A stretch of 64,000 nucleotides of DNA from Macrostomum lignano (GCA_002269645.1 NIVC01001753.1:62001-126000); one strand, 5' to 3'; positions 7,084 to 63,359 are shown, counted from the first letter of the stretch. The notes: generated from the letters alone by a model not told the origin. Numbers and translations are program-made.

Positions 7084-7542
7084 TCACATGCGCATTATTG
7101 TAAACCCAGCATTGTGCAGTGTCATGATTGCTTTGACAATGTCAGACTTGCTTATAGAATTTTCATGCTCACAATCATCACGATCGGGGCAGCCCTCAGG
7201 GCAGCCCTCTCCTGCCTTAATTGTTATACCTTTGTCTCTTGCAATCTTTTGCAATTCTAGCTGGTGGGCTCTATCATTACCAGCTTTAACAGCAGTTGCT
7301 ACACCTCCAGCTACACCACCTGCGGCACTTACAGCGCCTGCAATGATTGGGATAAGAGCTGCTAATGGTAGGATTCCTCCTGACTTTTCATCTGTGATGC
7401 TGTGTCTTTGTTCATTACATTGAACTATTTGCTGTGTGGGATCGATTTTTACTTTGGCACCTTTAATTGATATAATACCTGGTTTCTTTGATTCAATGAT
7501 TTTATTGAGTTTATTGATGGTTCTGGTTTCAATCTTTGTCAT
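7084..7542 (-). CDS. Adenovirus pX/mu-like hydrophobic-motif protein
   Basis: SGGILPLAALIPIIAGAVSAAGGVAGGVATAV resembles the remembered adenoviral pX motif GGILPLLIPLIAAAIGAVPGIASVA. Confidence 0.65.
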   Translation of the reverse strand: MTKIETRTINKLNKIIESKKPGIISIKGAKVKIDPTQQIVQCNEQRHSITDEKSGGILPLAALIPIIAGAVSAAGGVAGGVATAVKAGNDRAHQLELQKIARDKGITIKAGEGCPEGCPDRDDCEHENSISKSDIVKAIMTLHNAGFTIMRM

Positions 7543-7558
7543 TTTTTATTTTAATATT

Positions 7559-8554
7559 TTAATTAATTTCTGTGTCAGCTGGTATCACTAGGAGTTCAGC
7601 TCTAGTGAATGACCGCGTGGGGGATTTAGGGTTAAAAGCCTGAGATAAAAAGTAATAGTCACCGGAGTCGGAGGTAAAATGTCTGTCTATTTTATGCACA
7701 TCGAGGCTGAAGTATGGATCTGTAGCTCTTCTTTTGGTGTCTTTCTCTAGCTCTCCAGGTAGATATAAAAAGCGTAGAAACTCAGAGTTTGTCAGTATGT
7801 ATGGTGATTCAACTCCTGGAAGCTTAGGGTAGTTCGAGGTGTCTGTTTTATGAGATGCCTTAAGTTCGACAGTGTCTTGTTTAATTGCATGGGACGGTTT
7901 TAATCCAGTCATGTGTGTGACTTCATTGTTCAGTTGCTCTATGACAGTGGGGAGGCGGTCTGTCCACTTGGTATAGTATTGGCCACTTTTTAGTTTCAGC
8001 TCTTCAGCTGTCTGCTTAGTGAATAGCCTCTTGGCTAGAGTTAGATTGAATCTTTCCACAAAAGCCTGGTCTCTGTGGAGCTCAGTTCTTCCTTAGCGAA
8101 TCTCTGTATTTTTCTTTTCCATAAGGGATTTGACTGCCCCATAGAATTCTTTACCCGGGTCGGTCATAAAGATTTCAGGGTAACTAAGGGGTGAGTTTTT
8201 ATAAATATCTTGGAGGGCGGCTGCAACTGCTTCTGACTTCTTCGTCTTGAGTGGGCGAGCTTCCTTATATCTGGAAGCAATGTCAATAATTGTAAGAGCA
8301 TACTTGTAGCCTGAGTCGTTGGGGAGAAACAAAAGATCTGCTTGGTGCGCTTCATTAGGTTTATAGATGCTAAAGTGAGGTCTTGTAAATTTTACTGGTG
8401 GGAAATAGACTTGAAAGACAGCCTGCTTAGAGAGCCACTTTTCTACTCTAGCTTTTGGTTCCTTACTTAGTTCTGCGAGTTTGGTGACTGCATTTTTTCC
8501 TACAAAGAATCCTTTGTCGCTGTAGTAGAGTTTTTTAAGTTTCTGATCTGTCAT
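7559..8554 (-). pseudogene. Polinton retroviral-like (rve) integrase with a nonsense codon at 8093-8095
   Basis: Motifs HQADLLFL, IIDIASRY, MTDPGKEF and VERFNLTL (D,D,E). The TAA aligns with TAT in copy 2. Confidence 0.92.
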
Positions 8555-8584
8555 TTTTTTTAAAAGAAAATTTAAAATAAAATA

Positions 8585-9085
8585 ATGCAACGCTCTGGTG
8601 GTAAGTTAGATTCACATGGACTGATAGAAAAGCTTCCTCATCCAAACAAAGGCTCGACAGTTCCCGGGTACAAATATTGTGGGCCTTTGAATCCACTTGA
8701 AATTCAGTTGGATAAAGACAATAATCCGAATCCTGGGCACGAGCCTGTGAACGAGCTAGACTCTGTCTGCATGTGGCACGACGTTAAATATAGAGATTTT
8801 CCTGAGGAGAAGAATCGCTGGGACAAAGAAATGCTTAGGAGACTCGACAATATAGGGGCTTCAAGCGGGTGGAGGGAATCGATCGCTCGGAAGCTAGTTA
8901 AAGCTGTTATTTTTGGTAAGACAAAACTGGGGTTGGGGGTCGGCGGCGAGGGTGGGTGCACAGGGAGAGAGGGCTGGTGCACGAGGAGAGAGGGCGGAGG
9001 CTCAGGAGCAGGGTTTATTTTGTGCGCTCCTAACAATGAATTGGGAAGACTGCTGAAAGAGCTGGGGGTAGAGAGAGCAGAATGA
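8585..9085 (+). CDS. Parvovirus VP1-type phospholipase A2 domain protein
   Basis: PGYKYCGPLN (Ca-loop-like), P.NELD.VC.WHDVKY (catalytic HD) and RWDKEM. Confidence 0.85.
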   Translation: MQRSGGKLDSHGLIEKLPHPNKGSTVPGYKYCGPLNPLEIQLDKDNNPNPGHEPVNELDSVCMWHDVKYRDFPEEKNRWDKEMLRRLDNIGASSGWRESIARKLVKAVIFGKTKLGLGVGGEGGCTGREGWCTRREGGGSGAGFILCAPNNELGRLLKELGVERAE

Positions 9086-9214
9086 TTCAAGTGCCTTAAG
9101 TGGTTGGAAAGAAAACCTTGCGCGAAAGCTTGTAAAGGGGATTATATGGGAGTGGGAGAGACGGGATAGGGTGGTCTAATTCCAGCGTATTTATAGCAAC
9201 GAAAAGGGTTTTCC

Positions 9215-9283
9215 TTCTAGAATTCTGCTTCTAGAATATTCTAGAATAAAAAGAGAATCCCACGCCTTCCAAAGCTATAAAAG
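9215..9283 (+). promoter_or_regulatory. Candidate heat-shock element plus TATA box
   Basis: TTCtaGAA at 9215-9222, a perfect TTCtaGAAtaTTCtaGAA at 9229-9246, and TATAAAAG at 9276-9283. Confidence 0.55.
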
Positions 9284-9365
9284 CGAATCATAATCCTCGT
9301 CTGGGGGTTATGCGCTAAATTCACTATCAAGTCTATCGACAACGATTGCCACAATTTTCACAACA

Positions 9366-9545
9366 ATGAGCAACATTGAGAAAACAATCGAGAAATTGAA
9401 GGAGCTGCATGCGAAAAGTGATATTTCGCTTGCGGAGGCGTTAGCGTCTTGGTCGCCGGAGGAGCTGAAGAAGTTTAAGGAGAAACTTGACAAGCTAGAA
9501 GAAGATGGAAAAAACAAGAGTAAAAAACATAAAGGAGACCAATGA
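9366..9545 (+). CDS. 59-aa charged helical ORF (MSNIEKTIEKLKELHAK…), absent from the ORF track
   Basis: ATG at 9366 to TGA at 9543-9545, downstream of the TATA box. Its stop overlaps the next start (ATGA). Confidence 0.55.
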   Translation: MSNIEKTIEKLKELHAKSDISLAEALASWSPEELKKFKEKLDKLEEDGKNKSKKHKGDQ

Positions 9546-9790
9546 ATCGCAATGCCGACAACGAGCAGGAGACATTCCTACGAAATCTCAAACGGAGGCT
9601 CACTGATCTGGCCGCAAAAGGTCTTCGCATTGACGGTGGCCTGCTTAAGACGCTGCTGTCCAGCCTAGGACAAGATCTACGGAATAAATCTAGCGAAGAG
9701 GTCCGCAGTGACCAATTGGGCCGTGGACGTTCGAGACGACCCAGGTGACGAAGTAGATGACCCAGGTGACGAAGTAGATGTCATGGAGTG
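9542..9790 (+). CDS. Small ORF coupled to the previous one, possibly frameshifted into an acidic tail
   Basis: 68-aa ORF. An alternative frame reads VRDDPGDEVDDPGDEVDVME* across a 21-bp tandem duplication. Confidence 0.45.
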
Positions 9791-9951
9791 AGAAGAAGTG
9801 ACTACTACATGGCTGTTGTGTTTCAAATGGTGATTTATATAAATTGATTAGTCGTTAAATAAAATCCCGCTTATAATTATTAAAATAAATAATAACTGAA
9901 TCAACATAATTCGTTTTTTTGTTAATTGGAATCTGACTCGACACGTTTTTT

Positions 9952-10393
9952 ACCTACTACTAGTAGAAGTAATAGTTCAGAGTGAATATCTTTAGCGACA
10001 GAAAATTTCAATTTACGAAGCTTCGTAAACTCTTTAATGAAAAAGCAGAAAATACTAAAATATGTTTTTAACCTACTGCTAGTAGAAGTAGTAGTTTAGA
10101 GTGAATATCTTTAGCGACAGAAAATTTCAATTTACGAAGCTTTGTAAACTCTTTAATAAAAAAGCAGAAAATACTAAAATATGTTTTTAACCTACTGCTA
10201 GTAGAAGTAGTAGTTTAGAGTGAATATCTTTAGCGACAGAAAATTTCAATTTACGAAGCTTCGTAAACTCTTTAATGAAAAAGCAGAAAATACTAAAATA
10301 TGTTTTTAACCTACTGCTAGTAGAAGTACGAGCGTAGTAGTTTAGAGTGAATATCTTTAGCGACAGAAAATTTCAATTTACGAAGCTTCGTAA
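9952..10393. repeat. 119-bp tandem repeat (about 3.7 copies) carrying an 18-bp palindrome
   Basis: Units start at 9952, 10071, 10190 and 10309. Each contains TTTACGAAGCTTCGTAAA or a near-perfect variant. Confidence 0.92.
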
Positions 10394-10419
10394 GCATATA
10401 AAAGACAATCAAGATTCAA

Positions 10420-10894
10420 AGAAAATTTAGATTTTTTTCAGAGGGTAAGGACCCTGCGCTGATGATTTAAAATCTTTGGGATCTTGTAGTACGTTGCGGA
10501 TTGAATGTGGGGAGAATAATTCAGATTATTTTCTGATTGTTTCGAAGATGCTATGGGTGGATGTTGGTGGATTATCTCAGTATCAGTGAGCATAACAAGT
10601 GTCCACAGTGAGCATAACAGGTATCAGTGGACACCTTCTCTGATTCTGTCAGGGATAATATGGATGGATTTAATGGGATTATGTTCGAAGTTTTCGGAGC
10701 AAGTGCGACCCCCCTTTTTTTCTGATTCTGTCGGGGATAATATGGATGGATTTAATGGGATTATGGAGGAGGTTTTGTGAGCGAGTGCGACCCCCCTTTT
10801 TTTCTGATTCTGTCGGGGATAATATGGATGGATTTACTGGGATTATGGAGGACGTGAAAAATTTTGTCCCAAAAGCCCCCTCATGCCTTCTACT
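10420..10894. repeat. Polinton terminal (TIR) region with about 82-bp internal repeats
   Basis: Homologous in inverted orientation to 20630-21135. Contains repeats of TTCTGATTCTGTC(A/G)GGGATAATATGGATGGATTT. Confidence 0.85.
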
Positions 10895-11283: not shown

Positions 11284-12486
11284 AATCAGCGGTCCCAGTG
11301 CGTGACAACGATTGCCTGGCGAGTGCCGGTGTTACGGTTTAGAACATCCGGGGCTCCGGCCAGTTTTGGGTCGCCGATCCGGAGACTGCAAACGGGCTGG
11401 GATCTCCGACCGGAGACCTTAAAGGGTGTAAGATCTCCTTCGGAGACTACAAACGGTTATGGGTCTCCGCGATAGGAGATCCATAACCGTTGTGGGATCT
11501 CCAGGGCATGGTCAGGTCTCTCTATCCGGAGATCCTAAACCAGATTCTGTTGTCCCCTCGGAGATTCTGCACCATTTGCCGATCTCCGTCACGAGTGCAA
11601 AAACTAAGGTTTGATTTAGGATCTCCGGTTATCGATCTCCCCCATAATTAATATGTCGAAAATTACCATTTTTAGCTTTTTTGTGCATGGAAACCTTCTC
11701 TTAGCCACTTAACAACGTCAGTAGTTTTTCCATTTTAAGGGATTTTCCAAATGAGGAAGTAGTTTTCTCTGTAGCTCACAAATTTCGCAGCCGCCATGCA
11801 GGGCCATGTCAGGGCAAAATAGCAAGCTTTGGTAAATAAGAGTAAATGTGTTGTCAGTACATTTTCCGCAGTACAATTGTAACAAAAAACTGGATACTCT
11901 TTTCCCTGATAAGCCCGATACTATTAAAAAGTAAGAAAATCCCAAACAAACAATGGGTCATTATACGTCGTATGCCTTCACTGCTTATATACGAGCTAAA
12001 ATTTGCATTTTTCACTTGTCGCGCTCAATGGCTCATTCGGACTTCCGCTGTCAAATTACGCAATCAAATCATTCGACTTAGGAGTACAGTCCAACCTACA
12101 GAAAACAAATCTAACTAAGCCTAAATTTAGCCCCACTTGATTGATGGCTGTGTGAACGGGCCGTATGAACTATATAGATAAACTTATCGAAAAAAGAGTT
12201 GCGCAAGCTAGGCTGCTCACATGCTGGGCTTTTTGAAATCAGAGAAATTTAATATAGCTCTTATTTTCTAAGTTAACAATACTCCGGAGAGTCTAGCATG
12301 GCGGCGATCTCTAACCTTATCTTATGTCATGGTTTCTGATATCCGTGAGGGCGATTGTAAAATCGCGTAATTTTTCATGTTCGATCTCCGGGCCGGAGAT
12401 CCTTTACTCCGGAGAACAGAAACCCTAACAGTGCCGGTAGGCGCGAGCCATAGACAAATCGTTGTCACGTGCTGCGACCGCTGATT
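11284..12486. mobile_element. Non-autonomous TIR element with subterminal GGAGAT/ATCTCC arrays
   Basis: 30-bp IR (27/30 matches) AATCAGCGGTC… / …GACCGCTGATT. Dense GATCTCC/GGAGA motifs at 11370-11645 and 12280-12415. No convincing TSD. Confidence 0.7.
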
Positions 12487-12871
12487 CTTTGCATTGTTTT
12501 TCTGTTTGACGATCCTACAGACAATGCATTGTTTGTAGTAATGGATTGTTCTGCATTAAGAATGTGAATAATGATCGTCAAATTGCTAAACAATGCATTT
12601 TTTTGTATAGCTTGTTGCGTTCTAGTTTGGACTGCGGGCTTTTAATTTGAACACAGAGTTACGCAAAGCCCGGAGAATGCTGGCTAGTCTATGGCACAAA
12701 CCAGAAGCAACTGACGGGCTTTTAAATTCGACAGCGGGCACAAATCTGGAGTCTTTTCCTTCCCCTTTCTCTTGCATGTTTTTTTGCAAAACAACTGATT
12801 GTTCTGACTATGGATTTGAGGGCAGAAATGAGCGAATCCGAGGGCTGCTTCGCTATGTTGTTTCACGATTG

Positions 12872-14744
12872 GCCATAGACTAAAACAGCGGGCACGGAAT
12901 GTCGTTGTGTGCCCGCTGCCCTGAGGATTCGTCTATGTCCAAAGCCCCTAAAGCCTGTTCATACAGCTGCAGTGAAGAGAGACGTTGGAGGCATCGGACT
13001 AGAGCTTAGATTAGCTGCACTGATAGCATATTCTGACGGCAACATGATCAATTTCAGTAAGATAGCAACAGGCGATATTAGTGGCCTGGCTAATTCTGAG
13101 CTGCAGTTTATATCTCGACTGTCCATGCATGTAGAATCAACGGTAGATCAATTCACTGGGCTGCCGGTCCTGGACCACGAGGAGGTCGAAGAATTCCTGA
13201 ATTCCGCTATTGATCCGGAGTGTTCGCTACGAGACTTGGATGCGAAAGAACTTCAAAACATTAAGGACACCGAGGCATCCTCAAGTCGCCTTCGACATTG
13301 GCTACTACTCGGAACCACATTGAACGACTTAAGAAGTTCCTCCGCGAGAAGAAACTGCCTGAGGACATTGAGCGCATGCCACTGCGTTATGTCGACAGCT
13401 ATTTGCGCCTCTGGTAGTAAGTTTGAAAGGAAATCCTGCCGTGGGGACAAAGACATATGCACCGGATACGATCCGGGGCTTCAGAGCCAGCGTGCACAGG
13501 TACATGATTGAGACACGTGCGACTGAAGTCATTGGGAATGAGCAATTTCGCCTGAGCAATGAAACCTACTCGTGCGTCCTGCGTTTGAGTTGCCAGTCGA
13601 GGGAGCGAACCGTTGGAGACCAACGAGGATTCAAGGCCATCACGGATTCCGACTTGTCCCTGCTGAGTGCGTACTTCAACCGAAGGGACCCGGAGCGACT
13701 GCAAGACGAAGTGTTTTTTAACATTGTCTACCACTTTGGCTTCCGAGGTCGAGAATGGATAAGGGACCTGAAGGTATCCTCACTGCGGTTCTGCGAGCAC
13801 GAAGGTGTAGAGTGCATCGACATGGTTCAAACGGGTCCTGAGAAGACTGACTGCGGCAAGTATTCAGCAATGTTCAACCGGAACGCAAACGAGGATGTTC
13901 AGTACTGGTGGCTCAAAGTGTCCAGTTGAGGCAGTGCAACTGTATCTCGCCAAATTCCCACCTGGTGTGGAGGCACTTTTTCCAAAGCCCATAATGGTTC
14001 GAGCTGATTCTGATGTCTGGTACTCGGCCAAGCAGGTCTTGGGGAAGAACACGCTAAATGACATGATGAAGAACATCTCGCGGCGTGCAGGTCTTCAGTT
14101 GGAGTACACGAACCACTGCGTTCGTGTCAGTGTTGTAACCTACTTGGCAGAAGCTGGGCACAGTGTGAGAGAAATCAAGACTGTTACAGGTAACTTGTCT
14201 CCTGTTATGTTAATCATCTAAGTGCTTGTGTACCACCTGCGCCCATTAAATAACAGTTCAGTACCTTGCCCCCTCCCACTTTACCAGGCCATCGCACTGA
14301 TGCTGCAGTTGACCGCTATGTGAAAAGGATTTCTGAGAAGAGGAAACAGCAAATTTCAAATTCGCTTACGAGTGCTCTGCATGGAACTGTGTCGGAGACT
14401 GAGGCCACCTCCTCAAAGCGTATGGTCGTCATTGAGACTTCAGAGGCTAGCAACATCAATCAAAGACCGAACGCTATCCCAGCCGTGAGGCAATCATGCG
14501 ACCCAAACGACCTCAAGCCTACCGCTGTACTGGAAAAGGATGGCGTCCGACTTAGTTTCTTCATTTAGTGGACTATAGACTAACGTGGAGTATTAAAGGA
14601 ACTCATCTGGTCACATGCAGCCATTGCATACGCTATGTATACGTGACATGTCGGTTGTACTTTTAATGCCATGTTGTCCCATGATTTTGCGGGCCGCACG
14701 GCCCACGGAATCGTCAATGTGTGCCCGCGATTTTAGTCTATGGC
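12872..14744 (+). mobile_element. Crypton-like YR element 1 with 24-bp terminal inverted repeats
   Basis: GCCATAGACTAAAACAGCGGGCAC (12872-12895) versus the reverse complement of 14721-14744, GCCATAGACTAAAATCGCGGGCAC, enclosing the YR gene. Confidence 0.8.
13044..14568 (+). pseudogene. Crypton-type (DUF3504-like) tyrosine recombinase, frameshifted, one intron (14190-14287)
   Basis: Catalytic R (FRGRE), HxxR (NHCVR), TG|H (His restored only after splicing) and Y (VDRY). Frame breaks near 13290, 13415 and 13870. Confidence 0.9.
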
Positions 14745-14882
14745 ATTTATTATTAAGCGTAGAAAAAGATAAATTTATCGAAGTAACAGTACATGCTAGC
14801 CAGCATAACAAAAGTACATTTATAAACAATACGTCAATAGCAGAATAGTTCATCAATGCTTCATCAAAAGCCATGCAGCGTT

Positions 14883-15949
14883 AAAGATAGAAGCTGAGTC
14901 TTACACCGTCTTTCTCAAGCACTGTTTGTCTCCTTTACAAATCGATGGATACTAGCCCGAAAGCCACGAATCGTATCCGGTGCATAGGTCTTCGTTCCAA
15001 GCGCAGGATTAGCTCGCAGACTTACGTACCAGAGGCGCAGATAGCCGTCTAAGTAGCTTTCAATGTCATCAAGCAGGTTTTTCTCTCGAAGAAATTTCTT
15101 GAACCGATTAATTTGATTCTTAGTGGTTGCTAAGGTGGATGCCGAATTTGACGACTGTTCAAGTCGTTTGATGTCCTCTAGTTCTTGTACATCTAAGTCG
15201 CGATACGAATCTTCCTGAGTCCGTAGTTCCGCCAAAAACGTTTCCACGTCATTGAGGTCCATGCAGGATTGGCAATCCCGACCACTGATCGACAGACGTC
15301 TTCGCGCTCATGGACGCAGTTTGGACATGAATTCCAATTCAGCACTATCCAAGCCACTAATATCGCCAGTGGCGATTCTATGCAAATTGATCATGCCTCG
15401 TGCTCAATAATTAGTGTTCGTGCTTGTTGACTTCCATATAACGGGTGTCCCAAAAAAGGTAACACTTTGTGCGCTCACTATGAGTGAGCAGTTAGGCCTA
15501 TGGCACAGTAATTTAACAGGTCCACAGTAAACATTTGTAAGTTTTTCCCACAAACATTTGGTTGCGAAAAATTGCTCCAGAGACGAGTTATTGAGCACAG
15601 AAGTGTACGCTAGCTTTTCTGCCAAGCTTTGCCATACACAGCTGCCATAGACAATCTTTTGCTTTAAAAAATCTTAAGGAGCATAGACATAGTATGGCAG
15701 TGTATGGCAAAGCTTGGCAGAAAAGCTAGCGTACACTTCTGTGCTCAATAACTCGCCTCTGGAGCAATTTTTCGCAACCAAATGTTTGTGGGAAAAACTT
15801 ACAAATGTTTACTGTGGACCTGTTAAATTACTGTGCCATAGGCCTAACTGCTCACTCACAGTGAGCGCACAGTGTTACCTTTTTTTGGGACACCCGTTTA
15901 TTGTATTCCCAACGAATGCAAAGTAAATTCTTATTTTATATCTATGGCT
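14883..15949 (-). mobile_element. YR element 2, internal-deletion derivative
   Basis: Starts at ATG 15394 (MINLHRIATGDISGL, cf. MINFSKIATGDISGL). Near 14920 it jumps to the C-terminus VLEKDGVRLSFYL* (cf. VLEKDGVRLSFFI*). Candidate end GCCATAGAT on the minus strand at 15949. Confidence 0.8.
15441..15898. mobile_element. Tc1/mariner-type foldback MITE
   Basis: Near-perfect ~205-bp inverted arms starting ACGGGTGTCCCAAAA, a ~42-bp spacer, and TA on both flanks. Confidence 0.85.
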
Positions 15950-16041
15950 CAGCCATGGTTAAATATACAGACAAGTGAGTCGCAGCCCCAGAGGCTGTTT
16001 TTTTTCTTAGCACAGGAGCGAGTGCACCAACAATACAACAT

Positions 16042-16054
16042 TGGTGGCAGCGGT
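16042..16054 (+). promoter_or_regulatory. Primer-binding site, probably tRNA-Leu
   Basis: TGGTGGCAGCGGT lies one base after an LTR-like end …CAACA (16040). It is complementary to the …ACCGCUGCCACCA 3' end of eukaryotic tRNA-Leu. Confidence 0.75.
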
Positions 16055-16113
16055 AAAAGCGCACTTGGCACGAAAGTGCATCTCCGTTGCAGGAAAGAGG
16101 CGGGACACCAAAG

Positions 16114-19100
16114 ATGAGCCTACTACCTCAGCCATCTCCGTTCGACCCGGAAAAGGATCCATCGAACGTGGCGAAAAGATGGGAGGACTACCTACAGGAA
16201 ATCACGCTGTGGTTGGACGCCTGCGGAATAACAGACGACAAAAGAAAGCGATCTGCATTTCTGCTCTGTGCCGGTGTGAAAGTTCGAAAAATACTAGAAA
16301 ACCTGGACAACACAGGATCTGACTTCAAAACGGCTCAGACCCGACTGGACGAATACTTCAAGGACGGAACAAACGTGGTATACGAAACCTTCAACCTGCT
16401 GCAAATCAGGCAAAAGGAAGGCGAGGCCATTGACTCTTTCCATGGCCGACTGCAGGAAGCAGCGAAATACTGCGACCTCGAGGTATCAACCACTGATGCA
16501 ACAACCAAACTGTCCTATGAAGACCGAATAATTCGCGATCTGGTAGTCCTAAACTGCAACTCAAACAGCCTCAGACGGAAGCTCGTCCAAGAAGGGTCAA
16601 CTCTGACTCTGAAGAGAGCCATCGAAAAAGGAAGATGCTTCGAATCGACGAACAGCCAGAGCGGCGTCATTGAGAAGCACGTCTCCGACCCGAGCACCGT
16701 CAATGCAGTTGGACAGTCAAAAGGACCAAGGAGATTCCCTAAATCGAAGAAAACTGGAATTGACAGCAAGCAGTTTCTTAGAAGAAAGTCCAGTGCTCGC
16801 GATGTCTGTAGCCGCTGTGGAAGAAGCTCACATACAGCAGAAAACTGCTATGCGCGCAACGATACTTGCAAGAAGTGCAATAAGGTGGGACATCATGCCA
16901 AGATGTGCAGAACCAAACTACCAACCAAAAGTAAACTTCAAGTTTACGAAACGAAAGAATCAGGCGTGACTGAATCGTCAGACTCAGAGGAGATTCATCC
17001 GATAGCAAGCGTCAGCGCGAAGAACGGTGCAACAAAGCAAGCTGTCATCAACGGCAGAAAATGCGATGTACTAATTGACTCGGGCTCCAATCTAAATCTA
17101 ATATCCTACAACACAGTTGCTAAAATGGTGAGCCCGGATCAGATTAACTCGAGATCACATATCAAGATTTGGTCGTACGGGGTCAGGACCCCCATCGAAA
17201 CCCAAGGCACAGTACATCTGGAAGTTACTCTCAACGAAAGTACACAGCAAATGAAGTTTCACATAACTCCAGTAAAGGATGCACGCACTATCATCGGATT
17301 TGAGGACGCCTTCAAGCACGGTTTCCTGACATGGGGCTCGGATAAAAGCTGCCTTCACATCGAGAACATTCAGCAGCCAACGCAAGTGATTCTGGAAGAG
17401 TTCAAGGATGTCTTCCGTGGAATAGGAAAACTCAAAGACAGCAAAGTTAAGATTCGCCTGAAGGAGAACGCCAATCCTATTGTTCATCCACCATCGCGTA
17501 TACCAGCACACCTTCACCAGAAACTGCGCGAAGAACTAGAAGGGCAGTTAAGAGAGGACATAATCGAGCCAGTCAAGGGAACTACTGAATGGGTGTCAAG
17601 AATAGTGGCTGTTCCGAAGGCCAACGGTAAATTAAGAGCCACGGTTGATCTCAGAGACCTAAACAAAGCTACTAGGAAGGAGCACTATCCACTGCCCAGC
17701 ATCGACGAACAACTGATTAACGTTGGCGATGCTAAGTACTTCTCCTACTTGGATGGCAATAAAATGTTTCATCAGCTAGAACTGCACGAAGAATCCAGGA
17801 TGCTCACGACATTTTCAACAGGCCTGAAAGACTGGCCACTTATGAGATATAAGAGACTACCAATGGGCTGGGTGAACTCATCGTTTGCACTCCAATCGGA
17901 AATGCATCAAGTTCTTGCTGGCATTTCAGGAGTTCTGAATATCCAGGATGACATCGGGATCTACGGTTGTACTTTGGAAGAGCACAATGACCGCTTGAGA
18001 AAAGTCCTGCAACGACTGAAAGAGAATAACATAACCATCGGGAAGGAAAAGTGCAAGTTTTCAGTGGATAAAATAACCTTCATGGGAATGCTGCTGACTC
18101 GCAAGGGATTGCAAATTGGTGACGAAAAGGTGCAAGCCATTCGGAACTTCAAAGAACCTACAAATCCCAGTGAGGTAAGGTCGTTCATAGGCCTAGTGCA
18201 ATTCGTCTCACGCTTCATCCCTAACTTGGCGACCATCGCAGAACCGATTCAGAAGTTAACCCGAAAGCAAGTCAACTGGAACTGGAGCACAACACAGAAA
18301 GAAGCCTTTGCAGAAATCATCAAACGAACTTCTACCTCAAAAACACTGGCCTACTTCGACACTTCAAAAATAATCGAACTTCGAGTCGACGCTTCACCGG
18401 TGGGTCTCGGAGCTGTTCTAACCCAAACAGACAGTCGAGGCACCATCAGTCCGGTATGCTACGCAAGCAGGACGCTAAGTGACGTCGAAAGAAGGTACAG
18501 CCAGACAGAGCGCGAGGCATTAGCAATAAAATGGGCGTGTGAAAAGTTCCAGATCTATCTACTGGGCGCTCCAAAATTCACGGTTATTACTGATCACAAG
18601 CCACTGCTTGGTTGTTTTCGCCCAGGTTCCAAACCGCCTCCGAGAATCGAGAGATGGGCGATGCGCCTCCAGCACTTCAATTTCAAATTAAAGTACGAAC
18701 CAGGAGAGGCAAACGAGGCAGACTACTTATCCAGACAACCGATAAACGTGGAGAACCCCAAATATCAAGTGCCAAGGCAGACGAACATCTCATCCAGCAA
18801 ATTTCTACAGAAGCTCAATATTGGGGAATCTCTAAAAGTGACATTGAGAAGGATTCGAAAGATGACCCGTGGATTCAATCAGCTTTGAGATCGCTACAAA
18901 CGGGGCACTGGAGTAAATCCAACACGTATTACAACGTCAGAAGCCAACTTTCCAGCACAAATGGAGTCCTGTTGTACCAAAACCGCTATGTAGTTCCGAG
19001 AAAGTCTGTTATGGCAGTGTTAGAGACAATGCACGAAGGGCATCTGGGAATCACCAAAATCACGGAGCGGCTGAAAAGATGCGTTTGGTGGCCTCTGATG

Positions 19101-19244
19101 GCAGAAGATGTACAGAACTTCGTATCATCATGTGAAAGTTGCTCAAGAGCACTTCCGGAAATGAGAAAACCACCAATCATTCCGACGGAGCTACCAGAAG
19201 GAGCCTGGAAGCTAATAGGTACCGATCTAAAAGGACCTCTTTAT
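16114..19244 (+). mobile_element. Ty3/Gypsy gag-pol, 3'-truncated inside the integrase
   Basis: Two CCHC knuckles, protease LIDSGS, RT IQDD, RNase H VDASPVGLGAVL/EREALA. Frameshift near 18760, then the integrase HHCC; breaks after IGTDLKGPL. Confidence 0.95.
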
Positions 19245-20629
19245 GCCATAGACAAAATCTGCGGGCAAAACACTGACGATTCCTTAGGCCGTCTTGCCCG
19301 CGAAATCGTGAGACAACTTAGAATTGAAGCTATACTTAAGCGAGGACGTTTCATTTTACAAAGCAGAGCAGAGCGGAGAGAGCCAAACTAAAAATGGAGG
19401 CACCACAGGTTGTGCACTTAATAAATTATCAGCATCTTCCGGTTGACAGTCTCAATGGTTTCACACGCGAGGAATTGGATTTCGTTGCCGAGTTGTCCGG
19501 GATCGACTGCCGTAGGGACGAATTAGTGAGCGATTTTATCTCCTTCATTGAACGCTCTCTGGGCGAAGATGTGTCAGCTATTCCTATTCCCGACCTACCA
19601 GCCGATTTCGATCAATAACTCAAAGAGCTAGACGACGCAGAAATTGCTGGTCTTCCTGCGAGTAGTCGTAAGCAGATGTTTGAGCATGGAGAAAGGCTGG
19701 TTGAATTCTTGAACAGCCGTGGTTTAAACGCCAATCTTGGTAACTTTAATGACGCCACTCTGAATCAATACCTGCGCATCTAAAGACAAAGGAAGGCCGC
19801 GGTTATTCACCTTCTTCGCTAGTTTGCATTCGTGCTGGAATACAACGATACTTGAATATTGTAGTGAAACGCAGGACCAACTTAGTTGCTAGCGGAACTC
19901 CTTTCGACGGTTCCAATCGCATGTTACAGTACAAAGTCCGGGAATACATTCAGTCTGGACAATCTACACAGAGCTTCGATCCATTTGAAGAAGGCGATGT
20001 GTTGACGCTTCGGGCTTTTTTCGATCGCAGTGACGCTGAGCGGCTACAATACGAAGTTATGTTTGAGTTGCTATACCAATTGGGCGAGCTTGGTCAGGAA
20101 CATTTAAAGTACTTTCTGACGAAGAAGCCTCTGATTCGCCGCGTCGATGCGGATGGCAGATCCTACGCTTGTCTGCCTCTGCTACCGTCCAAGAACCGCC
20201 GAGCTGAACTGGACTCTGCTGCAGTAGCAGACGATAAACACGCAAGGATGTATGACACCAAACTTCTGGATTTGTACGAGGCATCAATTCCTACGAATTG
20301 TGAATCGTTTTTACCGCGGCCGATAAAGTCTACGTCGGAGAAAAAGTTTAATTTCTCAACGAATGCGCATCGCGGATACAGATTTCTGCAAGAATTTATG
20401 TCCAATCTGTCTGAGAAAGCCAAGCTAAGCAAACGATACACGAATCACTGCTTCAGGTAATCTTGAACTACGATAAAATAGTACTACAGAATAATAGAAG
20501 CAGGAGTAAGCAAAAATAACGGTACTAAATATATTTGCATTCAAAAACGATTTTTTTCCAGAGTGACGCGAATTTGTGACCTGGATTCTTGTGGTCAAAG
20601 CGTTCACGACATTATGCTAGTAACTGGGC
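19245..20629 (+). mobile_element. YR element 3 (divergent family), gene from 19394, intron 20457-20561, cut by the Polinton
   Basis: End motif GCCATAGACAAAATCTGCGGGC. Motifs KTKEGRGYSPSSL and DAERLQYEVMF. After splicing it reads NHCFR-VTRICDLDSCGQSVHDIMLVTG|. Confidence 0.85.
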
Positions 20630-21138
20630 AGTAGAATGCATGAGGGGGCTTCTGGGACAATTTTTTTAACGTCCTCCATAATCCCATTAAATCCATCTAT
20701 ATTATCCCCGACAGAATCAGAAAAAAAGGGGTCGCACTTGCTCCAAAAACTTCGAACATAATCCCATTAAATCCATCCATATTATCCCTGACAGAATCAG
20801 AGCATAACAGGTGTCCTACTTGCTCCGAAAACTTCGAACATAATCCCATTAAATCCATCCATATTATCCCTGAATCAGAAAAAAGAGGGTCGCACTTGCT
20901 CCGAAAACGTCATCCATAATCCTCCTAACCTATCCTCCTTCCTCCCTGACAGAATCAGAGCATAACAGGTGTCCTACATAATCCACTGACATCCACCCAT
21001 AGCATCTTCGAAACATTCAGAAAATAATCTGCATTCTTCTCCCCACATTCAATTCGCAACGCGAAACCAGATCCCTAAGACTTTAAATCATCAGCGCAGG
21101 GTCCTTACCATTTGAAAAAATCTAAATTTTCTCTAAAA

Positions 21139-21312
21139 ATGCTTCCAATCGTCTCTCCAGGTTCTTATTACAAAGCGCATGAGCCTAATTACAAGAGTAA
21201 GTACCAATGCAAACTAGAATGCAGCGAGTACATGAGAAAATATTGGCCCAGCGTTTATATCAATGTCCCTAATAATAATCAAGCTCTGTACAGAGAAGTC
21301 TCACCCCGGTGA
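21139..21312 (+). CDS. Small subterminal ORF, unknown
   Basis: 57 aa with an AAAAATG start context like other Polinton genes. Confidence 0.35.
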   Translation: MLPIVSPGSYYKAHEPNYKSKYQCKLECSEYMRKYWPSVYINVPNNNQALYREVSPR

Positions 21313-21534
21313 GACTTCAGTTCTCACCCCCTCAGTGTAGCTCAGTGTACGATAGAACTTAGGCGTGTGAAAGTACTAACATTTAAAAATGGCCTCACTG
21401 GTAGCTATTCTAAGCGTTCTCATTGGTTGATAAGATTATACAAAAGAGAGAGTGGAAATGACTTGTTACTAAAAATAACTCAAGACTGCTAATGCGATCG
21501 TATTTCAAATTGGCTAAGTCATAACCCGTAACCG

Positions 21535-22173
21535 TCACTGTCTCCACGTCGCCGCATCCGCCTGGTAGCGCACCTCGTCCCGAATGAGCTTCATATTTTC
21601 CAGAACGAAGCTAACTGGTACGGCGCAGCGTTGTAGGGCCGGAAATTCTGTCAATAAGTCGTACACTCTCAACTTCTTGTCCAAAGTCTGCCTCGATACT
21701 TGTAGATTAAGCCGTCGAATTATATTCCGAACCGACTTTAGTGTACATTTGAGTCGGTGAATGATGGAGCTGATGTAAAATGACACAAATAATGTGCGCT
21801 TATCGTAAAAAGTCTCATGTTGAAATAATTCCGCCAGCATGTTCTGTACAGTGGGTAGAACAGTGGGTAGATGACGAAAGTTCAACGCGCGCATACTTTC
21901 CTCGATCACTGATAGCTCCCTTGTTGGCGCTTGAACTTCGACTCCATACGAAGCACGAAGGCGCTGGAAAACAGCAGCTACTCGCGCTTCGTAGGCGGAA
22001 ATATCGCGTTGGGTTTGTCCTTCCATGCGAGCCAAATCGTGTTGTATTTTCTCCTCTTTGAAATTTTCAAACAATTGTTGGAGTCCATCTCTCTGCTCTA
22101 AAGGTATTAAATTAATCAAATCGTTCACAAATGCGTTAAGTCGAGCGGTTCTAACTGTAATTCTTTCAGCCAT
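21535..22173 (-). CDS. Orphan helical protein in the copy 2 variable slot
   Basis: Intact ~212-aa ORF (MAERITVRTARL…). No counterpart in copy 1. Confidence 0.7.
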   Translation of the reverse strand: MAERITVRTARLNAFVNDLINLIPLEQRDGLQQLFENFKEEKIQHDLARMEGQTQRDISAYEARVAAVFQRLRASYGVEVQAPTRELSVIEESMRALNFRHLPTVLPTVQNMLAELFQHETFYDKRTLFVSFYISSIIHRLKCTLKSVRNIIRRLNLQVSRQTLDKKLRVYDLLTEFPALQRCAVPVSFVLENMKLIRDEVRYQADAATWRQ

Positions 22174-22345
22174 TGCGTTTTCTAATAGCAATTGAGTGAA
22201 GAGGGCTGGCTGGCTTCCGCCTTTACTTAAAAACCGTCATGTAGGGTTTGAGGTGGTAGTGGTTGCTGGGCCTTGGTTATGCGCAGTTCAGTTCAGACGT
22301 GGCTAAAAATATGCTAAATCATGCTAGCTAAAATCGTATATAGTA

Positions 22346-22783
22346 TCATTCTGCTCTCTCAACCCCCAGCTCTTTCAGCAGTCTTCCTAGTTCTTTACTT
22401 GGCGCGTGCAATACAAAACCTGCCCCTTCTCCCAAACAGCCTCCAAGCCCCAACCCCAACTTTGTCTTACCAAAAATAACAGCTTTAACTAGCTTCCGAG
22501 CGATCGATTCCTTCCAAACCCTTGAAGTCACCATATTGTCTAATCTCCTAAGCATTTCTTTATCCCAGCGATTCTTCTCCTCAGGATAATCCCTATACTT
22601 AACGTCGTGCCACATGCAGACAGAGTCTAGCTCGTTCACAGGCTCATGCCAAGGATTTGGATTATTGTTTTTATCTAACTGAATTTCAAGCGGATTCAAA
22701 GGCCCGCAATATTTGTAGCCGGAAATTGTCCAGCCTTTGTTTGGATGAGGAAGCTTTTCAATTAATCCGTGAGCATCAGGCGT
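22346..22783 (-). pseudogene. PLA2 paralog, start codon apparently ACG
   Basis: Motifs GYKYCGPLN and WHDVKY. AAAAACG at 22783-22781 sits where an ATG is expected. Confidence 0.85.
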
Positions 22784-22810
22784 TTTTATTTAAAAAAATA
22801 ATTTCTAAAA

Positions 22811-23817
22811 ATGGCAGAAGAAAAACTTAAATCTATCTACTACAGCAACGAAGGATTCTTCGTAGGAAAAATGCAGTCACCAAACTCGCAGAACTAAGTA
22901 ATGAATCAAAAGAAACAGTTGAAAGATGGCTCTCTAAGCAGGCTGTCTTTCAAGTCTATTTTCCACCAGTAAAATTTGAAAGGCCCCATTTCAGTATTTA
23001 TAAACCTAATGAGGCGCACCAAGCAGATCTTCTGTTTCTCCCCAATGACTCAGGCTACAAGTATGCTCTCACAGTTATAGACATTGCCTCCAAATATAAG
23101 GAAGCTCGCCCACTCAAGACGAAGAAGTCAGAGTTTGTTGCCAGCGCACTGCAAGAGATCTATAAAAACTCTCCTCTAACCTATCCAGAAATGCTCATGG
23201 CCGATCAGGGTAAGGAATTCTATGGGGCAGTAAGAAGTCTCCTACAAAAGCATAATACGGAAATATGCTATGGCAGAACAGACCTGCACAGAGACCAAGC
23301 GTACGTTGAGAGATTCAATCTAACTCTAGCCAAGAGACTATTCGCTAAGCAGACAGCGCAAGAACTCAAACTGAGTGCGGGGCAGTACTACACAAAATGG
23401 ACAGACCGCCTCCCCACTGTTATAGAGCAACTGAACAATGAAGTCACACGCATGACTGGATTGAAACCGTCCCATGCAATTAAACAAGACACTGTCGAAC
23501 TTAAGGCATCTCATAGAACAGACAACACAAAACACACCTCGAACTACCCTAAGCTTCCAGGAGTTGAATCACCATACATACTGACAAACTCTGAGTTTCT
23601 ACGCTTTTTATATCTACCTGGAGAGCTAGAGAAAGACACCAAAAGAAGAGCTACAGATCCATACTTCAGCCTTGATGTGCATAAAATAGACAGAAATTTT
23701 ACCTCCGACTCTGGAGAGTATTACTTTTTATCTCAGGCCTTTAACCCTAAATCCCCCACGCGGTCATTTACTAGAGCTTAACTCCTAGTGATACCAGCTG
23801 ACACAGAAATTAATTAA
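22811..23817 (+). pseudogene. Polinton integrase paralog
   Basis: Closely similar to 7559-8554. One A lost near 22870 and a premature TAA at 23779-23781. Confidence 0.92.
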
Positions 23818-23899
23818 AATTTTATAATAAAAAATGACAATCAGGATGCTACGAGATGCTAGTTAACGTAGGTTAACGATGCCATATTAACATCTTATC

Positions 23900-26578: not shown

Positions 26579-27976
26579 TGTTAGGAATAAACAAATTTAA
26601 TGCTTGTTCCTACGATTCGTACGACAGAAACTAAAGTGTCTGCAGAAGTGTCTGAATAAGTGTCGGCGAATGTTTAATACGTCAACTTCCTTAAAGTTAG
26701 AAATTTAATGCACGGCACCGTGAAAATAACGCGAAACATATTTGTACGGTGCCGTGTAAATAACACGAACTTATTTATACGGTCCCGTGCAAATAACAAG
26801 TGCCATTAAAAAAACTGACGCAAATTATGGGTGCGTTCGAGACTAACTACTGAATTCACGCCTCAGATTTCATGCCCAAAAATGATGAAACTGAAACTGT
26901 GAAAATAAATAAATAAACGATTGCGCAAGTTATATAACCTTTGCGCACACAATCACAGGCCTAGACGTGCTAAAATAAGGGAGAAAAAAAGTTTTTGTGT
27001 TCTTATAATGGAGTGAAAAGGGAGTGATCAAATTTTAATCGCAGCAGAGATTGCGCATGTATTGAGCTTCTGTAATTTCTATTCACTAATCATTGCGCAA
27101 CCATGCGTACTAATCCGATTTGATTTATATGTTCCACAAAGTTTGTAAATATCAATGGAATATTTATAACTTTAACAAAAATAGCACCTATTTAAATTCC
27201 GTGCGCAAGACCACTGCAAGGCTCGCCGAGCAGTTGAGGTTGATCACTAACTACTGTATATATGGTATGGTATTGGATTCTTCGAACCTGTGTTGCATCA
27301 TGTGATTAAACACATATTGTCTATTGCATACTTGAGCAATTAAGTGAGCGTAAATATCACTAAAAGTGAAATAATAAATAGTTAGTATGTAGATAGTGAT
27401 TGCTAATTAGTTAGTAATTAAATAGTAAGTAAATAATGATTGTACTCTTAGCAATATGATTTACTTTACTTGTGGTTATTCACTTATTCTTAGTACATTA
27501 TTGCTGAAATGGATCTGCAATGTCACTTTTAGCACAAGAATGTATGTATGTTAGCACATGTTGTAAAAGCTTTTCATTATCTATAGACCTACTTATATTA
27601 ATATTAAGACTCTTCCAATCTTGCCTAGTCTAGCATAACTTGTAAACTCTCCAAGCACTCATTCGTTGATTTAAATACTACTAAAGCAAAGCATTGCCTA
27701 TTAAATTACAGTAAATATTGACATTAAAATAAATCAAGAGTATAATTATAAATTTCAATGTTAGACATATATTCTAATGCAGTTTAATATATAGATTAGG
27801 GGCCTAGCTATTCTTTGGCTCCTATCTATATTCATTTGAGTTTAACATGTTATATGGGGACATCTGCTTTGATAAACAGTGCTCTTGCTTATATAAAGTA
27901 ATACAGAAGAGCAATAGTAGCTAACTTATGCTTATGTTAGCCAATGCCCCCAAATATCCAAATTTTAAACTTCTTT

Positions 27977-28552
27977 AATATATATAGATTCAATTATGTT
28001 TTCAGTGTTTTCATTGCTAGCCTCTGTCAGGGACCTAAAAGCACAATTGGCATGTACTATTTACCACTAAATATTGATTGATTGATTTTATTTTAAACAG
28101 TCAGTGGACTTAGCATTTAGTTCAGAAAAAGTCAATTTAGCTACTGGCACAATATACAGATTCAATTGTGTTTTCTGTGTTTTCATTGCTAGCCTTTATC
28201 AGGGACCTAGAAGCACAATTGGCATATACTATTTACCACTAAATATTGATTGATTTTATTTTAAACAGTCAGTGGGCTTAGCATTTAGTTCAGAAAAAGT
28301 CAATTTAGCTACTGGCACAATATACATGTTCAATTGTGTTTTCTGTGTTTTCATTGCTAGCCTTTATGAGGGACCTAAAAGCACAATTGGCATATACTAT
28401 TTACCACTAAATATTGATTGATTTTATTTTAAACAGTCAGTGGGCTTAGCATTTAGTTCAGAAAAAGTCAATTTAGCTACTGGCACAATATACAGATTCA
28501 ATTGTGTTTTCTGCATTTGTTTTTATTGCTAGCCTCTGTTAGGGACCTAAAA
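27977..28552. repeat. About 168-bp tandem repeats at the inner end of the left TIR; fewer copies in the right TIR (35277-35700)
   Basis: Unit starts near 27977, 28151, 28319 and 28487. Confidence 0.88.
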
Positions 28553-28889
28553 CATTAACATTAAGTTATTCAACTAAATTTTAAGTTTAATGCATTTTTC
28601 ATTCATTGTCCCTTATGACGTCATAGAAGAGATCCCATTAAATTTATGCTTAGTAAACAATTTGCTAAATTTTAGCTCATCCTGCTGTTATGAAAGCCAT
28701 AAAATTCTTTTTCTTCATAGTCTATGCTTCTGATCTCATTGTTTTAAGTTCCATATAGAATTCGCTGAAGGTTAGTTGATGCTGTGAAAATCTAGGATGA
28801 AATGCAGGACTTCATCCTAACAGCTGCTGTTATTTTGTTGATAAGCATTTTTGTCTGAATAACATGGAGCCTGTACATTGCACTTTCAG

Positions 28890-30972
28890 GAACGCAGCTG
28901 TGTGCGTCGTGATGAAGATTTTCTGCGAGCGCTGAAAAATCTTAAAGATGCTGTTACAATTGAGGCTCTCATGCACGAGTCTGGTGTTGCTCGCTCAAAG
29001 GTTTTCGACAGGCTCTTACATGAAATGAACTCTTTACGTGAGTCCGCGTACACGGAAAGCGATATAAAAATCATCAGGTGCGATTTGCAGCAGAATAGAC
29101 GTCGTGTTCTTGATGCAGCCAAAGAAGTCCTGCTTGAATGTGAAATCATGGAAGAGCCTGAAGCTGTCAATGATGCTTTGCTTGGAGACTCTGAGGAACC
29201 GACATGGCCACATATCCAACTAGAAGGCCTTAATAGCCTCTGGCAGCAAATACATAGCAACCAAGATGCAGTCATTCGCCAACAAGCTACAAAGAAATTT
29301 AACAACGCAGTGATTTCAGAATTGCAGAATCGAATTTTGCACAACTGCAGCCTGGTTATTGTACGCAGTAAATTTACGAATAACAATATTGCGCAGTACA
29401 CGCTGAGCTGCAGAGGAATCCTGCCTACAAATAAATCTAGATGTCCTGGCATTTGGACAGTTGTCACTCGAGGTGAGGTCTCTGTGTTCTTCAAAAAGTT
29501 GGGCCCAGCGCCCACCCACTCATCGCAGGAAAGGTGCGTGACTCTGACTCGAAAACCAAGACGGGATCCATTGCTGCAGCTCAAGCATCTATTGCCGCGT
29601 CTGTCGATGATTTCCGGCAGATGCCGTCCCAAAGAACGCTACTGAACATCAGAAACTACGAAAAGTCTAAAGAGAAGCAATGCCAGGACAGTGATGTACA
29701 TAACATGCTGCTCAAAGTTCAAAATGATGAACGTCTTCGCTCTTACGTCAAGATTGAATTTGATGGCCCCACTCCGTCAGTGTTCAACTTATGTCACGTG
29801 AAGTTGGTGGCGGAACTTTTGCAGACGATGGAACGTTCAAAGATCCCCATCAATCTAGTCATAGACTCAACTGGAGCTTCGATCTGCCATTGGCCTGGTG
29901 GGATGCCAGACAAGGTGTTGTACCACTACGCTCTTGTACTTCCAGGTGATCCAGGCAAAGGATTGAGTCAAGTATCCGTCCTTGATGCGGTATCGTGTCA
30001 CCACACAACAGCTCAACTGCTTTGCATGTTAGCTAAATGGCGTCAAGATTTAGAGCAAGTTCCTGGTTGTGGAAAGCTAAGAATAGCGAAAATCGTTACC
30101 GATTTCAACTGGCCTACGCTGCATTCCCTCATCAGAGTGTTCTGCGGTCTTGATATTAAGGAGTTCATTCGATGGTGCTACCTGATCAGCCTAGAATCAG
30201 CCAACGGCCAAGCAGGAGTGCCAAAATTTTTAAGAGCAACATTGGAGCAAGTTAAACAGCGCACTGCAATTGTCCTTGGCCGGAGCCATGTCATTAACGA
30301 ATTTCGCAATTGGCAGGAAGTAAAATGCGCAGAACCTGCAATTCGTAAAGTGTACATGCGTGGCTTTGCCAACATTGTGGCAAGTCAAGATGCGGCTGAA
30401 GGTCGGCGCCATCTGCAAAGTTTTTGTTTGTTTTGCTTCAGATCGATGCTCGAGAGGCGCAACCCGTAATTGAAGCCCTCTTGTCTGGTGAAGATAAAAC
30501 AACTGACGTTGAAGACGAATGTGAATTTTCTCAAATTGGAGCAGAGCCTTCGGCAAAAATTCGTGACTCGTCGCAGTTCTTCGCGCACGCGACTCTTTTA
30601 CTGCAGCAAATCAAGGCTGACTGTCAACGTGGCCATGATCGCGCCATGGCTATACAGAGTGCGTATGTGAACGAGAGATAGGCAAAACGTGTTGTTGACA
30701 TGTATGCCTATTTTCCACTCTTTAGTGGAATGATGGTTGACGCGCAGCGCTACTTCACTGGCACTACATTCACGCGTGACTTCCGTAACAGCGAAGGAAG
30801 TGTCGAGGTGTACCACCGGACAGTGAGGCGCGACGTGCTTGGCGGCCGCTCCAAGTCTATGCTCGAATTTTTACCACTGTTGGAAGAGTTCACCAGAGGA
30901 CGTCTTGTTTATCGGCTTAAGAGTATTGGAATCGAAATTGATATTGACTTGGACGCTATGGATGAAGGCACT
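28890..30972 (+). pseudogene. NOF-like/MULE DDE transposase, frameshifted
   Basis: Motifs LVIDSTG (D), KVLYHYALV, SCHHT, IVTDFNW (D), LGRSH (the CxxH position, with GGC where TGC is expected) and SEGSVEVY (E). Confidence 0.75.
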
Positions 30973-48801: not shown

Positions 48802-48983
48802 GCCATAGACTGCAAGCACAATCTCCTTTCCATCGTGCAAGAATGTTCAGACTAGCTCGCGCATATTTTTTCTATGGTTCAAGTCTAACTCCACACCCCC
48901 AGCTCCATCCTTGTCTACTTTAGCCACACATGTTGGATCAAATAAGAATGGGAATCAGGCACTTTGACTTGTGCGTCTATGGC
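48802..48983. mobile_element. 182-bp mini-element with GCCATAGAC…GTCTATGGC ends
   Basis: Same 9-bp inverted termini as the YR elements, with partial IR extension (TGCAAG / GCACAAG). Confidence 0.5.
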
Positions 48984-50495: not shown

Positions 50496-50496
50496 A

Positions 50497-62419: not shown

Positions 62420-63286
<867 letters not shown>

Positions 63287-63359
63287 GCCGCTATCCGCCG
63301 CGATCGCCGACGCCGCGACGCAGAGCCTACCAACCAGCCGTCACCCACCGACACCACCC

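Follow-up and report, generated by a model that had tools for sequence, protein, structure and literature searches.

What bounds the small recombinase elements that crowd 12.4-20.6 kb of a 64,000-nucleotide (nt) stretch of Macrostomum lignano DNA (GCA_002269645.1 NIVC01001753.1:62001-126000; "the window" hereafter means this whole stretch), a family of terminal inverted repeats or a recombination site? A sequence-only reading had taken 12872-20629 to be one family of Crypton-type tyrosine-recombinase (YR) transposons with terminal inverted repeats (TIRs) of the form GCCATAGAC-N7-GCGGGC. The window is eukaryotic DNA rich in transposable elements. As a single object this span was rejected, since it mixes a copy A, a copy B, a foldback miniature inverted-repeat transposable element (MITE), a Ty3/gypsy gag-pol (16087-19241) and a copy C. 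A, B and C are copies of small elements that carry a YR gene only. The explanation that we hold, with modest confidence, to be the probable one is that a palindromic attachment site has CCATAGAC/GTCTATGG as its crossover core, and that the elements integrate into each other's cores and so build arrays.

Copy A (12872-14744, 1873 base pairs (bp), + strand) is a near full-length CryptonA-like element, to judge by its inverted repeat, Pfam matches and homologues, and contains a single gene, without reverse transcriptase (RT) or DDE transposase. Its mended translation matches Pfam Phage_integrase (7e-10) and DUF3504 (1e-8), and the best of 37 word-indexed homologues reaches 69%. In blastp comparison with the Crypton reference YR domains of Kojima and Jurka (PMC3212892, Additional file 4), A matched six of eight CryptonA references with E values of 1e-20 to 1e-26 (31-37% identity) and the other two, CryA1_LG and CryA2_SK, with 1e-12 and 2e-7 (24-34% identity), while CryptonI references gave E values of at least 3e-5 and DIRS1 and Cre were not significant. 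Judged by these Pfam and blastp matches rather than by a tree, A and C are YRs of the CryptonA type, which sharpens the earlier Crypton assignment. With a relative as query, the clade comprised 5326 cluster representatives at E <= 1e-3.

None of the three copies is intact. The YR coding region of A (13044-14568, + strand) is spread over three reading frames and was pieced together by tblastn. It had been said that the catalytic R, HxxR, H and Y are all present after splicing; the residues are indeed there, but splicing is insufficient, because the set appears only once three 1-nt frameshifts (at ~13279, 13415 and ~13885) are mended, besides removal of a GT-AG intron at 14190-14287, and A is thus a pseudogene. 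In the mended protein R234, K267, H358xxR361 and H384 fall in columns of a 14-sequence alignment that are invariant or nearly so, and the terminal Tyr was read by eye from the conserved 'RY' that follows VTGH(R/K); its codon has lost 1 nt relative to copy B. The B-like relative L007, whose open reading frame (ORF) likewise ends just past VTG, appears to have the same intron donor position. Copy B (14745-15948, - strand) is A-like with an internal deletion, its N-terminal 115 amino acids being fused to the final 13 according to tblastn, and is 85% identical in nucleotide sequence to L007, from Logan run SRR24204725.

Copy C (19242-20629, + strand, with its core from 19245) belongs to a divergent CryptonA-like family, at about 30% amino acid identity to A, and has relatives of up to 54% and 41% identity. 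Its left module lies at 19245-19329, its ATG at 19394 and its one intron at 20457-20561, at a position after NHC(F/I)R that is shared with the relative L064. The box-I Arg of C is gone (GELGQE in place of GFRGRE), an in-frame stop stands at 19616, a frameshift lies near 19790, and the copy is cut off at 20629. The cut at 20629/20630 is made by an element X (20630-23843, + strand), outside the YR family, and was shown by alignment of X to its inverted twin at 7536-10894 (85-96% identity); the sequence past X does not resume C, and the missing YR C-terminus was found nowhere else in the window. The frameshifts of A, the internal deletion of B and the lost Arg, stop, frameshift and truncation of C mean that all three copies are dead.

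The pattern GCCATAGAC-N7-GCGGGC occurs at 12872(+), 14744(-) and 19245(+), three times against 0.06 expected (0/100 shuffles). The 9-mer GCCATAGAY occurs ten times in the window against 0.77-1.1 expected, and the motif stands at each of the A, B and C junctions: 12872, 12931 (with 1 mismatch), 14744, 15948 and 19245. Read on the + strand, cores in the same orientation at 12931, 14736 and 15940 part an older end remnant, A, B and the flank from one another. Followed by TAAAAYA, the motif precedes the ORF on the sense strand in all three copies, at 149 nt from the ATG in C, 172 nt in A and 95 nt in B. GCGGGC/GCCCGC is concentrated at the same ends, where 8 of the 22 window copies fall within 492 nt against 0.17 expected (about 47-fold, Poisson p ~1e-11), which bears out the earlier remark on extra half-sites. 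The full palindromic core CCATAGNCTATGG is without enrichment in the window (22 against 17.9 expected), and a candidate further end module at 12797-12845 showed borderline similarity (11/500 shuffles) and was not used.

Could the 9-mer be an unrelated short repeat or MITE family, or a product of chance or composition, that lies near YR genes by accident? Several copies have no adjoining YR gene (3896, 15644, 38916 and 48802/48983), and five near-copies sit within the foldback MITE, as such an accident would have it. We nevertheless regard this as very improbable, given the ten-fold enrichment of the 9-mer, the presence of the motif with N7-GCGGGCAC at both ends of A and again at the exact break of the gypsy ORF, and its recurrence to either side of a C-like gene from a second organism, where about 0.055 copies are expected per contig.

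The two ends of A are where the inverted repeats had been reported, and they were recovered: 12872-12895 and 14721-14744 form a 24-nt inverted repeat with 22/24 matches (0/500 shuffles), with the exact pattern on + and - strands. The left end is also more than a TIR. Its first 24 nt, the left repeat, open a 68-nt palindrome (12872-12939, + strand), found by DNA folding and motif mapping, of the form GCCATAGAC-N7-GCGGGCAC-[13 nt]-GTGCCCGC-N14-GTCTATGTC, with a fold of -18.8 kcal/mol (z = -5.7, 0/200 shuffles). Past the 24-nt repeat, the spacer keeps the orientation of the right end, so that 12892-12916 recurs as a 25-nt direct repeat (22/25) in the right-end module, and a second copy of the core, GTCTATGTC, follows at 12931-12939. 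The right-end module (14662-14744, + strand) consists of an IN block, GCGGGC, the spacer GGAATCGTC, GTGCCCGC, N7 and GTCTATGGC, its last 24 nt being the right repeat. From outside, an IN-like block on the - strand (12852-12870), a remnant of another end module, abuts the left motif of A; it matches the reverse complement of the left end of C at 16/18 positions (0/500 shuffles), which places A in or beside older end sequence. The flanks of A (TTG|...|ATT) show no duplication, with possible TGGC at both ends, or direct cores at 12931 and 14736.

Because Pfam found no DDE gene within A and no target-site duplication is present, a cut-and-paste TIR transposon is ruled out. A DIRS-like retrotransposon is ruled out likewise, as none of A, B and C contains an RT; the one at 16087-18888 is part of the gypsy element into which C is inserted.

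A distinct Crypton lineage with true TIRs, as had been proposed, is another matter. It would carry GCCATAGAC-N7-GCGGGC at both ends, break at the outer edge of the repeat and insert into unrelated targets, and the 22/24 repeat of A is what such a lineage should have. The left end of C mirrors the right end of A over 85 nt, as TIRs of about 85 bp in both families would predict; the gypsy integrase gene that received C shows no trace of a motif from before the insertion; the 5' edge of B has the motif with TAAAAYA; and two small units are flanked by inverted 9-mers in MITE-like fashion. One of these, m1 (12447-12695, 249 bp between inverted GCCATAGAC copies), is a possible non-autonomous derivative or end remnant, with a right end that reads GCGGGC...GCCCGG-N13-GTCTATGGC and similarity that is weak beyond the core; the other, m2 (48802-48983, 182 bp between inverted GCCATAGAC copies), is of uncertain status, without GCGGGC and in locally repetitive surroundings. 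Against true TIRs, the left end of A holds a direct copy of its right end and serves equally well as a 5' palindrome, an IN block lies outside its repeat, the 3' end of B has no inverted copy, and neither B nor C retains its right end, so that a TIR is seen once, in the only copy with both ends. Three related families whose ends were mapped lack TIRs, and a C-like relative carries the motif in direct orientation. The proposed TIR-bearing lineage is therefore not established, and we consider it rather unlikely.

Copy B lies between direct + strand copies of the core, GTCTATGGC (14736-14744) and ATCTATGGC (15940-15948). Its 5' edge reads GCCATAGAT and then ATAAAATA, matching TAAAACA / TAAAATC after the motif in A; the third-copy end that had been noticed is this GCCATAGAT at 15940-15948(-), the far edge of the minus-strand copy. 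The foldback MITE lies in the 5' untranslated region (UTR) of B (15440-15898, 459 bp), with 175-nt arms that are 98% complementary, termini AACGGGTGTCCCAAAAAAGG and five 9-mers at most 1 mismatch from GCCATAGAC.

Copy C gives what is, by sequence comparison, the best single evidence that the core is a terminus. The Ty3/gypsy gag-pol (16087-19241, + strand; Pfam RVT_1, RT_RNaseH, Integrase_H2C2) is interrupted by C. Nearly all of some 30 homologues of the gypsy integrase have D..GP(L/F)P followed by (S/T)GE..DYYSR; in the window the frame ends after GPL at 19241, and the core of C begins after three further bases (TAT), so that the break lies within 3 nt of the core. The rest of the integrase is absent from the window, and no integrase core was found elsewhere in it. 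The best matches of this pol, at 45-57% identity, are mostly from marine invertebrates and from unnamed contigs.

That C begins at 19245 with the same bipartite motif and 7-nt spacer as A had been noted and was confirmed, and the likeness goes further. The right end of A and the reverse complement of the left end of C are 80% identical over 85 nt (E 3e-14), sharing a module that runs CCATAGAC core, N7, GCGGGC, spacer ACAYTGACGATTCC, inverted GCCCGC and AAATCRTGRGACAAC. Outside it A and C have almost no nucleotide similarity, coding regions included. One way to explain this would be a chimera, in which 19245-19329 is a solo A-type right end, reversed, beside which a C-type element later integrated or recombined. 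Nesting and arrays are usual here (m1/A/B, and tandems in two relatives), the module is 80% identical while the proteins are at about 30%, and the C-like relatives L064 and L065 are without the GCGGGC module. These points fit a chimera, but the similarity to A stops at the inner edge of the module, at the IN block, and does not run into the 3' UTR of A; the motif-to-ATG distance in C resembles those of A and B; and the 8-nt core is kept in L065. We think a chimera improbable.

We located the ends of relatives, to an accuracy of a few bases, from comparisons of contigs in which the flanks differ. These elements are 1.8-2.2 kb long with one called gene. The L003-L006 family ends at 184-2213 with terminal microhomology TAAT, the L008-L011 family at ~94-2285 with AAT, and the L059-L062 family at 117-1912, again with AAT. 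No true TIRs were found in these three families. Each has a palindrome of 90-145 nt that starts 4-6 nt inside the left boundary (z of -13 to -15), and such palindromes also occur in L002, L012, L058, L063 and L066. In the L008 and L059 families the last 12-26 nt are an inverted copy of the segment just past the palindrome, while the match in L003 is borderline. Since the right end is inverted relative to that segment, the palindrome would close across the junction of a circle, leaving a 4-6-nt bulge at the crossover. Half-sites of the form SCGGGC/GCCCGS lie outside ORFs in 28 of 29 cases (10 loci), and the palindrome apex in L003, GAGGGCAC-GTTA-GTGCCCGA, resembles GCGGGCAC-...-GTGCCCGC in A. 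The GCGGGC(A)/CCGGGC(A) repeats beside the core in the window, arranged as a palindrome like classical YR sites, are most probably half-sites to which the recombinase binds. As to mobility, C interrupts a gypsy integrase motif, and the L003, L008 and L059 families lie in different flanks among contigs.

Two relatives, in marine metagenome contigs, are tandem. L003 (1-4243) is a CryptonA-like perfect head-to-tail dimer with a period of 2030 bp, and L063 (1-4017) holds two different YR genes in tandem (437 and 435 amino acids), each with its own palindrome before it. Upstream of A, the window at 12632-12745 contains two copies of CGGGCTTTTAA 80 nt apart, which resemble a repeated CGGGCTTTAATG in the ends of the marine L003 family; this likeness hints at an extended binding half-site common across families.

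The core itself recurs in one relative. L065, from the same run as L007 (SRR24204725), has an intact C-like ORF of 495 amino acids and direct copies of GTCTATGGTA at 36-45 and 1678-1687, 94 nt before the ATG and 120 nt past the stop. That run probably comes from a relative of the species that supplied the window. The 8-mer core is found twice in this contig, and in none of 10 other relatives, leaving L065 its sole carrier. Beyond the 8-10-nt core, the ends of L065 showed no significant similarity to the modules of the window. Thus the proposal that the motif is a recombinase core site is plausible and gains support, with the motif at every A/B/C junction, at most 3 nt from the gypsy break and on both flanks of the C-like gene of L065; the point of crossover within it is one that we infer.

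Several observations weigh against a palindromic attachment site with this core. Both ends are present only in A, and B is without a right-end motif of its own. Each of the three families is represented by one available copy from this genome, so that the A, B and C boundaries are putative. A can be delimited in two ways, by its TIR (12872-14744) or by direct cores (12931-12939 and 14736-14744). The polarity of the motif is inconsistent, with GCCATAGAC upstream on the sense strand in A, B and C and GTCTATGG upstream in L065. Chance alone should give a contig of 1.8 kb about 1.5 exact direct repeats of 10 nt, and three are present in L065; as such repeats are not rare, the significance of L065 rests on its repeat being a pre-specified motif. 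The strict motif pattern gave 0 matches in metagenome contigs, and a relaxed pattern gave 30, and 15 in viral contigs, with no further copies among them; all lie in GC-rich, prokaryote-like contigs without a YR homologue, and are therefore attributed to chance. Finally, 16-26 nt separate the CGGGC half-sites from the presumed crossover, a greater distance than in classical core sites, so that these half-sites may be accessory (arm-type) sites rather than core sites. Two further candidates with motif pairs 1411 nt apart (L046 and L054) were rejected, as they contain only a long membrane-protein-like ORF, lack TIRs and are read in opposite directions.

How would an attachment site of this kind produce what is seen in the window? 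Following the Goodwin/Kojima model, the recombinase would pair the two ends of an element and excise it as a circle, in which the ends would together form one long palindromic site. The circle would then re-integrate by reciprocal exchange with a short matching sequence. Resident copies would bear the same end sequence, so that new copies would land in old ones, which is how we propose that the m1-A-B cluster, and the tandem dimers in relatives, arose. In A, symmetric arms beside the core would yield a genuine 24-bp TIR as a by-product of the symmetry of the site, as distinct from a transposase-type TIR. The signs of a circle and its re-integration are indirect, namely the tandem dimer of L003 and the arrays.

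A wider form of this proposal is that CryptonA-type elements have a common attachment architecture, made of a 5' palindrome that closes across the circle junction, CGGGC half-sites and a short core. In the window this core would be the 8-10-nt GTCTATGG, common to recombinases of about 30% identity, serving as a resident target and giving self-assembling arrays that can look TIR-bounded; the presence within it of TATGG, the terminal repeat of CryptonS, would then point to an ancient exchange sequence kept across Crypton groups. We put this forward tentatively, as a possibility that we would not yet call likely.

Other features of the window stand apart from the YR elements. The two copies of X, at 7536-10894 (-) and 20630-23843 (+), are 3.2-3.4 kb long and 85-96% identical, with 82-bp tandem repeats, an rve integrase ORF at 22879-23778 (Pfam 1e-9), a parvovirus-type PLA2-like ORF on the minus strand at 22349-22699 (PF08398, 4.6e-7) and a 218-amino-acid ORF with a weak Tc3-HTH match; their sharp inner ends read AGTAGAAKGCATGAGGGGGC. 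An inverted repeat of 1557 nt (26842-28398 / 35277-36833), 100% complementary with arms 6.9 kb apart, adjoins one of 773 nt (36849-37621 / 43920-44692; 97%, arms 6.3 kb apart). The pair represents either elements with long TIRs or an artefact of assembly, and the ORFs at 28878-31311, between the 1557-nt arms, have no Pfam match. Clusters of short GGAGATC/GATCTCC repeats at 11340-11640 and 12290-12420, either side of a stretch of about 1 kb, resemble the subterminal repeats of another DNA transposon. Minisatellites and repeats at 49843-50513, 52689-52976, 34357-34668 and 63150-63300 include 21-nt GGATTGAAGTTGGATGAGGTT-type arrays, a 21/24-nt CCTCCCTTCGAGCAGACTCCG array and CAG-repeat tracts; the last lie where the window ends, in a stretch of 60% GC that is possibly an exon of the host.

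To our knowledge, no class of eukaryotic DNA transposons is less well understood than the Cryptons. They gave rise to the vertebrate DUF3504 genes (KCTD1, ZMYM2-4, QRICH1), and we know of no published terminal structure for the animal groups CryptonA and CryptonI, so that their annotation is unreliable and their mechanism untested. The gene family described here is a known one (CryptonA), and its end architecture is a new variant when set beside published descriptions. It offers an initial view of animal Crypton ends, which had so far been undefined. Ends defined by a core, half-sites and a palindrome would allow copies, miniature derivatives and empty sites to be found systematically, would make the circle model directly testable by a simple recombination assay, and could possibly provide a compact eukaryotic site-specific recombinase/site pair. 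If all this is only a local peculiarity of three dead copies, the value lies in a better annotation of the locus.

How, then, do these ends compare with those of known systems? The CryptonA elements of Kojima and Jurka (2011; e.g. CryptonA-1_SP, CryptonA-2_SP, CryptonA-1_SK and CryptonA-1_OL) are, like A, about 1.9 kb long with one YR gene and without a C-terminal extra domain. The CryptonA/KCTD1 motifs RGRE, K, YTNHCxR and VTGH(R/K)..Y are found in the elements of the window too, and an animal host context is common to both, the gypsy element here being nearest to marine-invertebrate copies. Unlike published CryptonA, the ends here have an 8-9-nt core, CGGGC half-sites, a 5' palindrome and, in A only, a 24-bp TIR. 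That survey (Mob DNA 2:12, PMC3212892) gives the termini as 'n.d.' for all CryptonA and CryptonI families and describes 50 copies of one CryptonI family without terminal repeats, and a 2026 study of fungal CryptonA reported no usable repeats, with ends still undefined. The statement that Cryptons usually lack TIRs thus holds for the animal Cryptons of the 2011 survey, but the table of the same survey lists a Phytophthora element, CryptonF-2_PI, with 602-bp TIRs. The 22/24 TIR of A departs from the no-TIR trait of published animal Cryptons, a trait that is descriptive and not a mechanistic requirement.

In the literature, Cryptons are modelled as forming circles and integrating at microhomologies of 4-6 bp. 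CryptonS and CryptonF, the stramenopile and fungal Cryptons, share this presumed circle-and-integrate mechanism and short terminal direct repeats with the elements here. The dominant terminal direct repeat of CryptonS families, TATGG (5 bp), is contained in the gTCTATGGc core of the window, a 5-nt likeness that may be coincidence. These groups differ in belonging to other YR clades and in having extra domains (GCR1_C, C48 peptidase), and their repeats of 4-6 bp have no described palindromic module, unlike the ends here. DIRS-like elements also encode a YR, insert into each other and have inverted terminal repeats together with an internal complementary region that rebuilds a circular junction; they differ in carrying RT/RNase H (and methyltransferase) and in their length of 4-6 kb, whereas the elements here have a YR gene only. 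Classical YR sites (loxP, FRT, dif, lambda att) likewise have a short asymmetric exchange region set between inverted binding elements; direct sites lead to excision of a circle, and integration gives hybrid sites. The palindromes described here, at 68-145 nt, are far longer than these classical sites.

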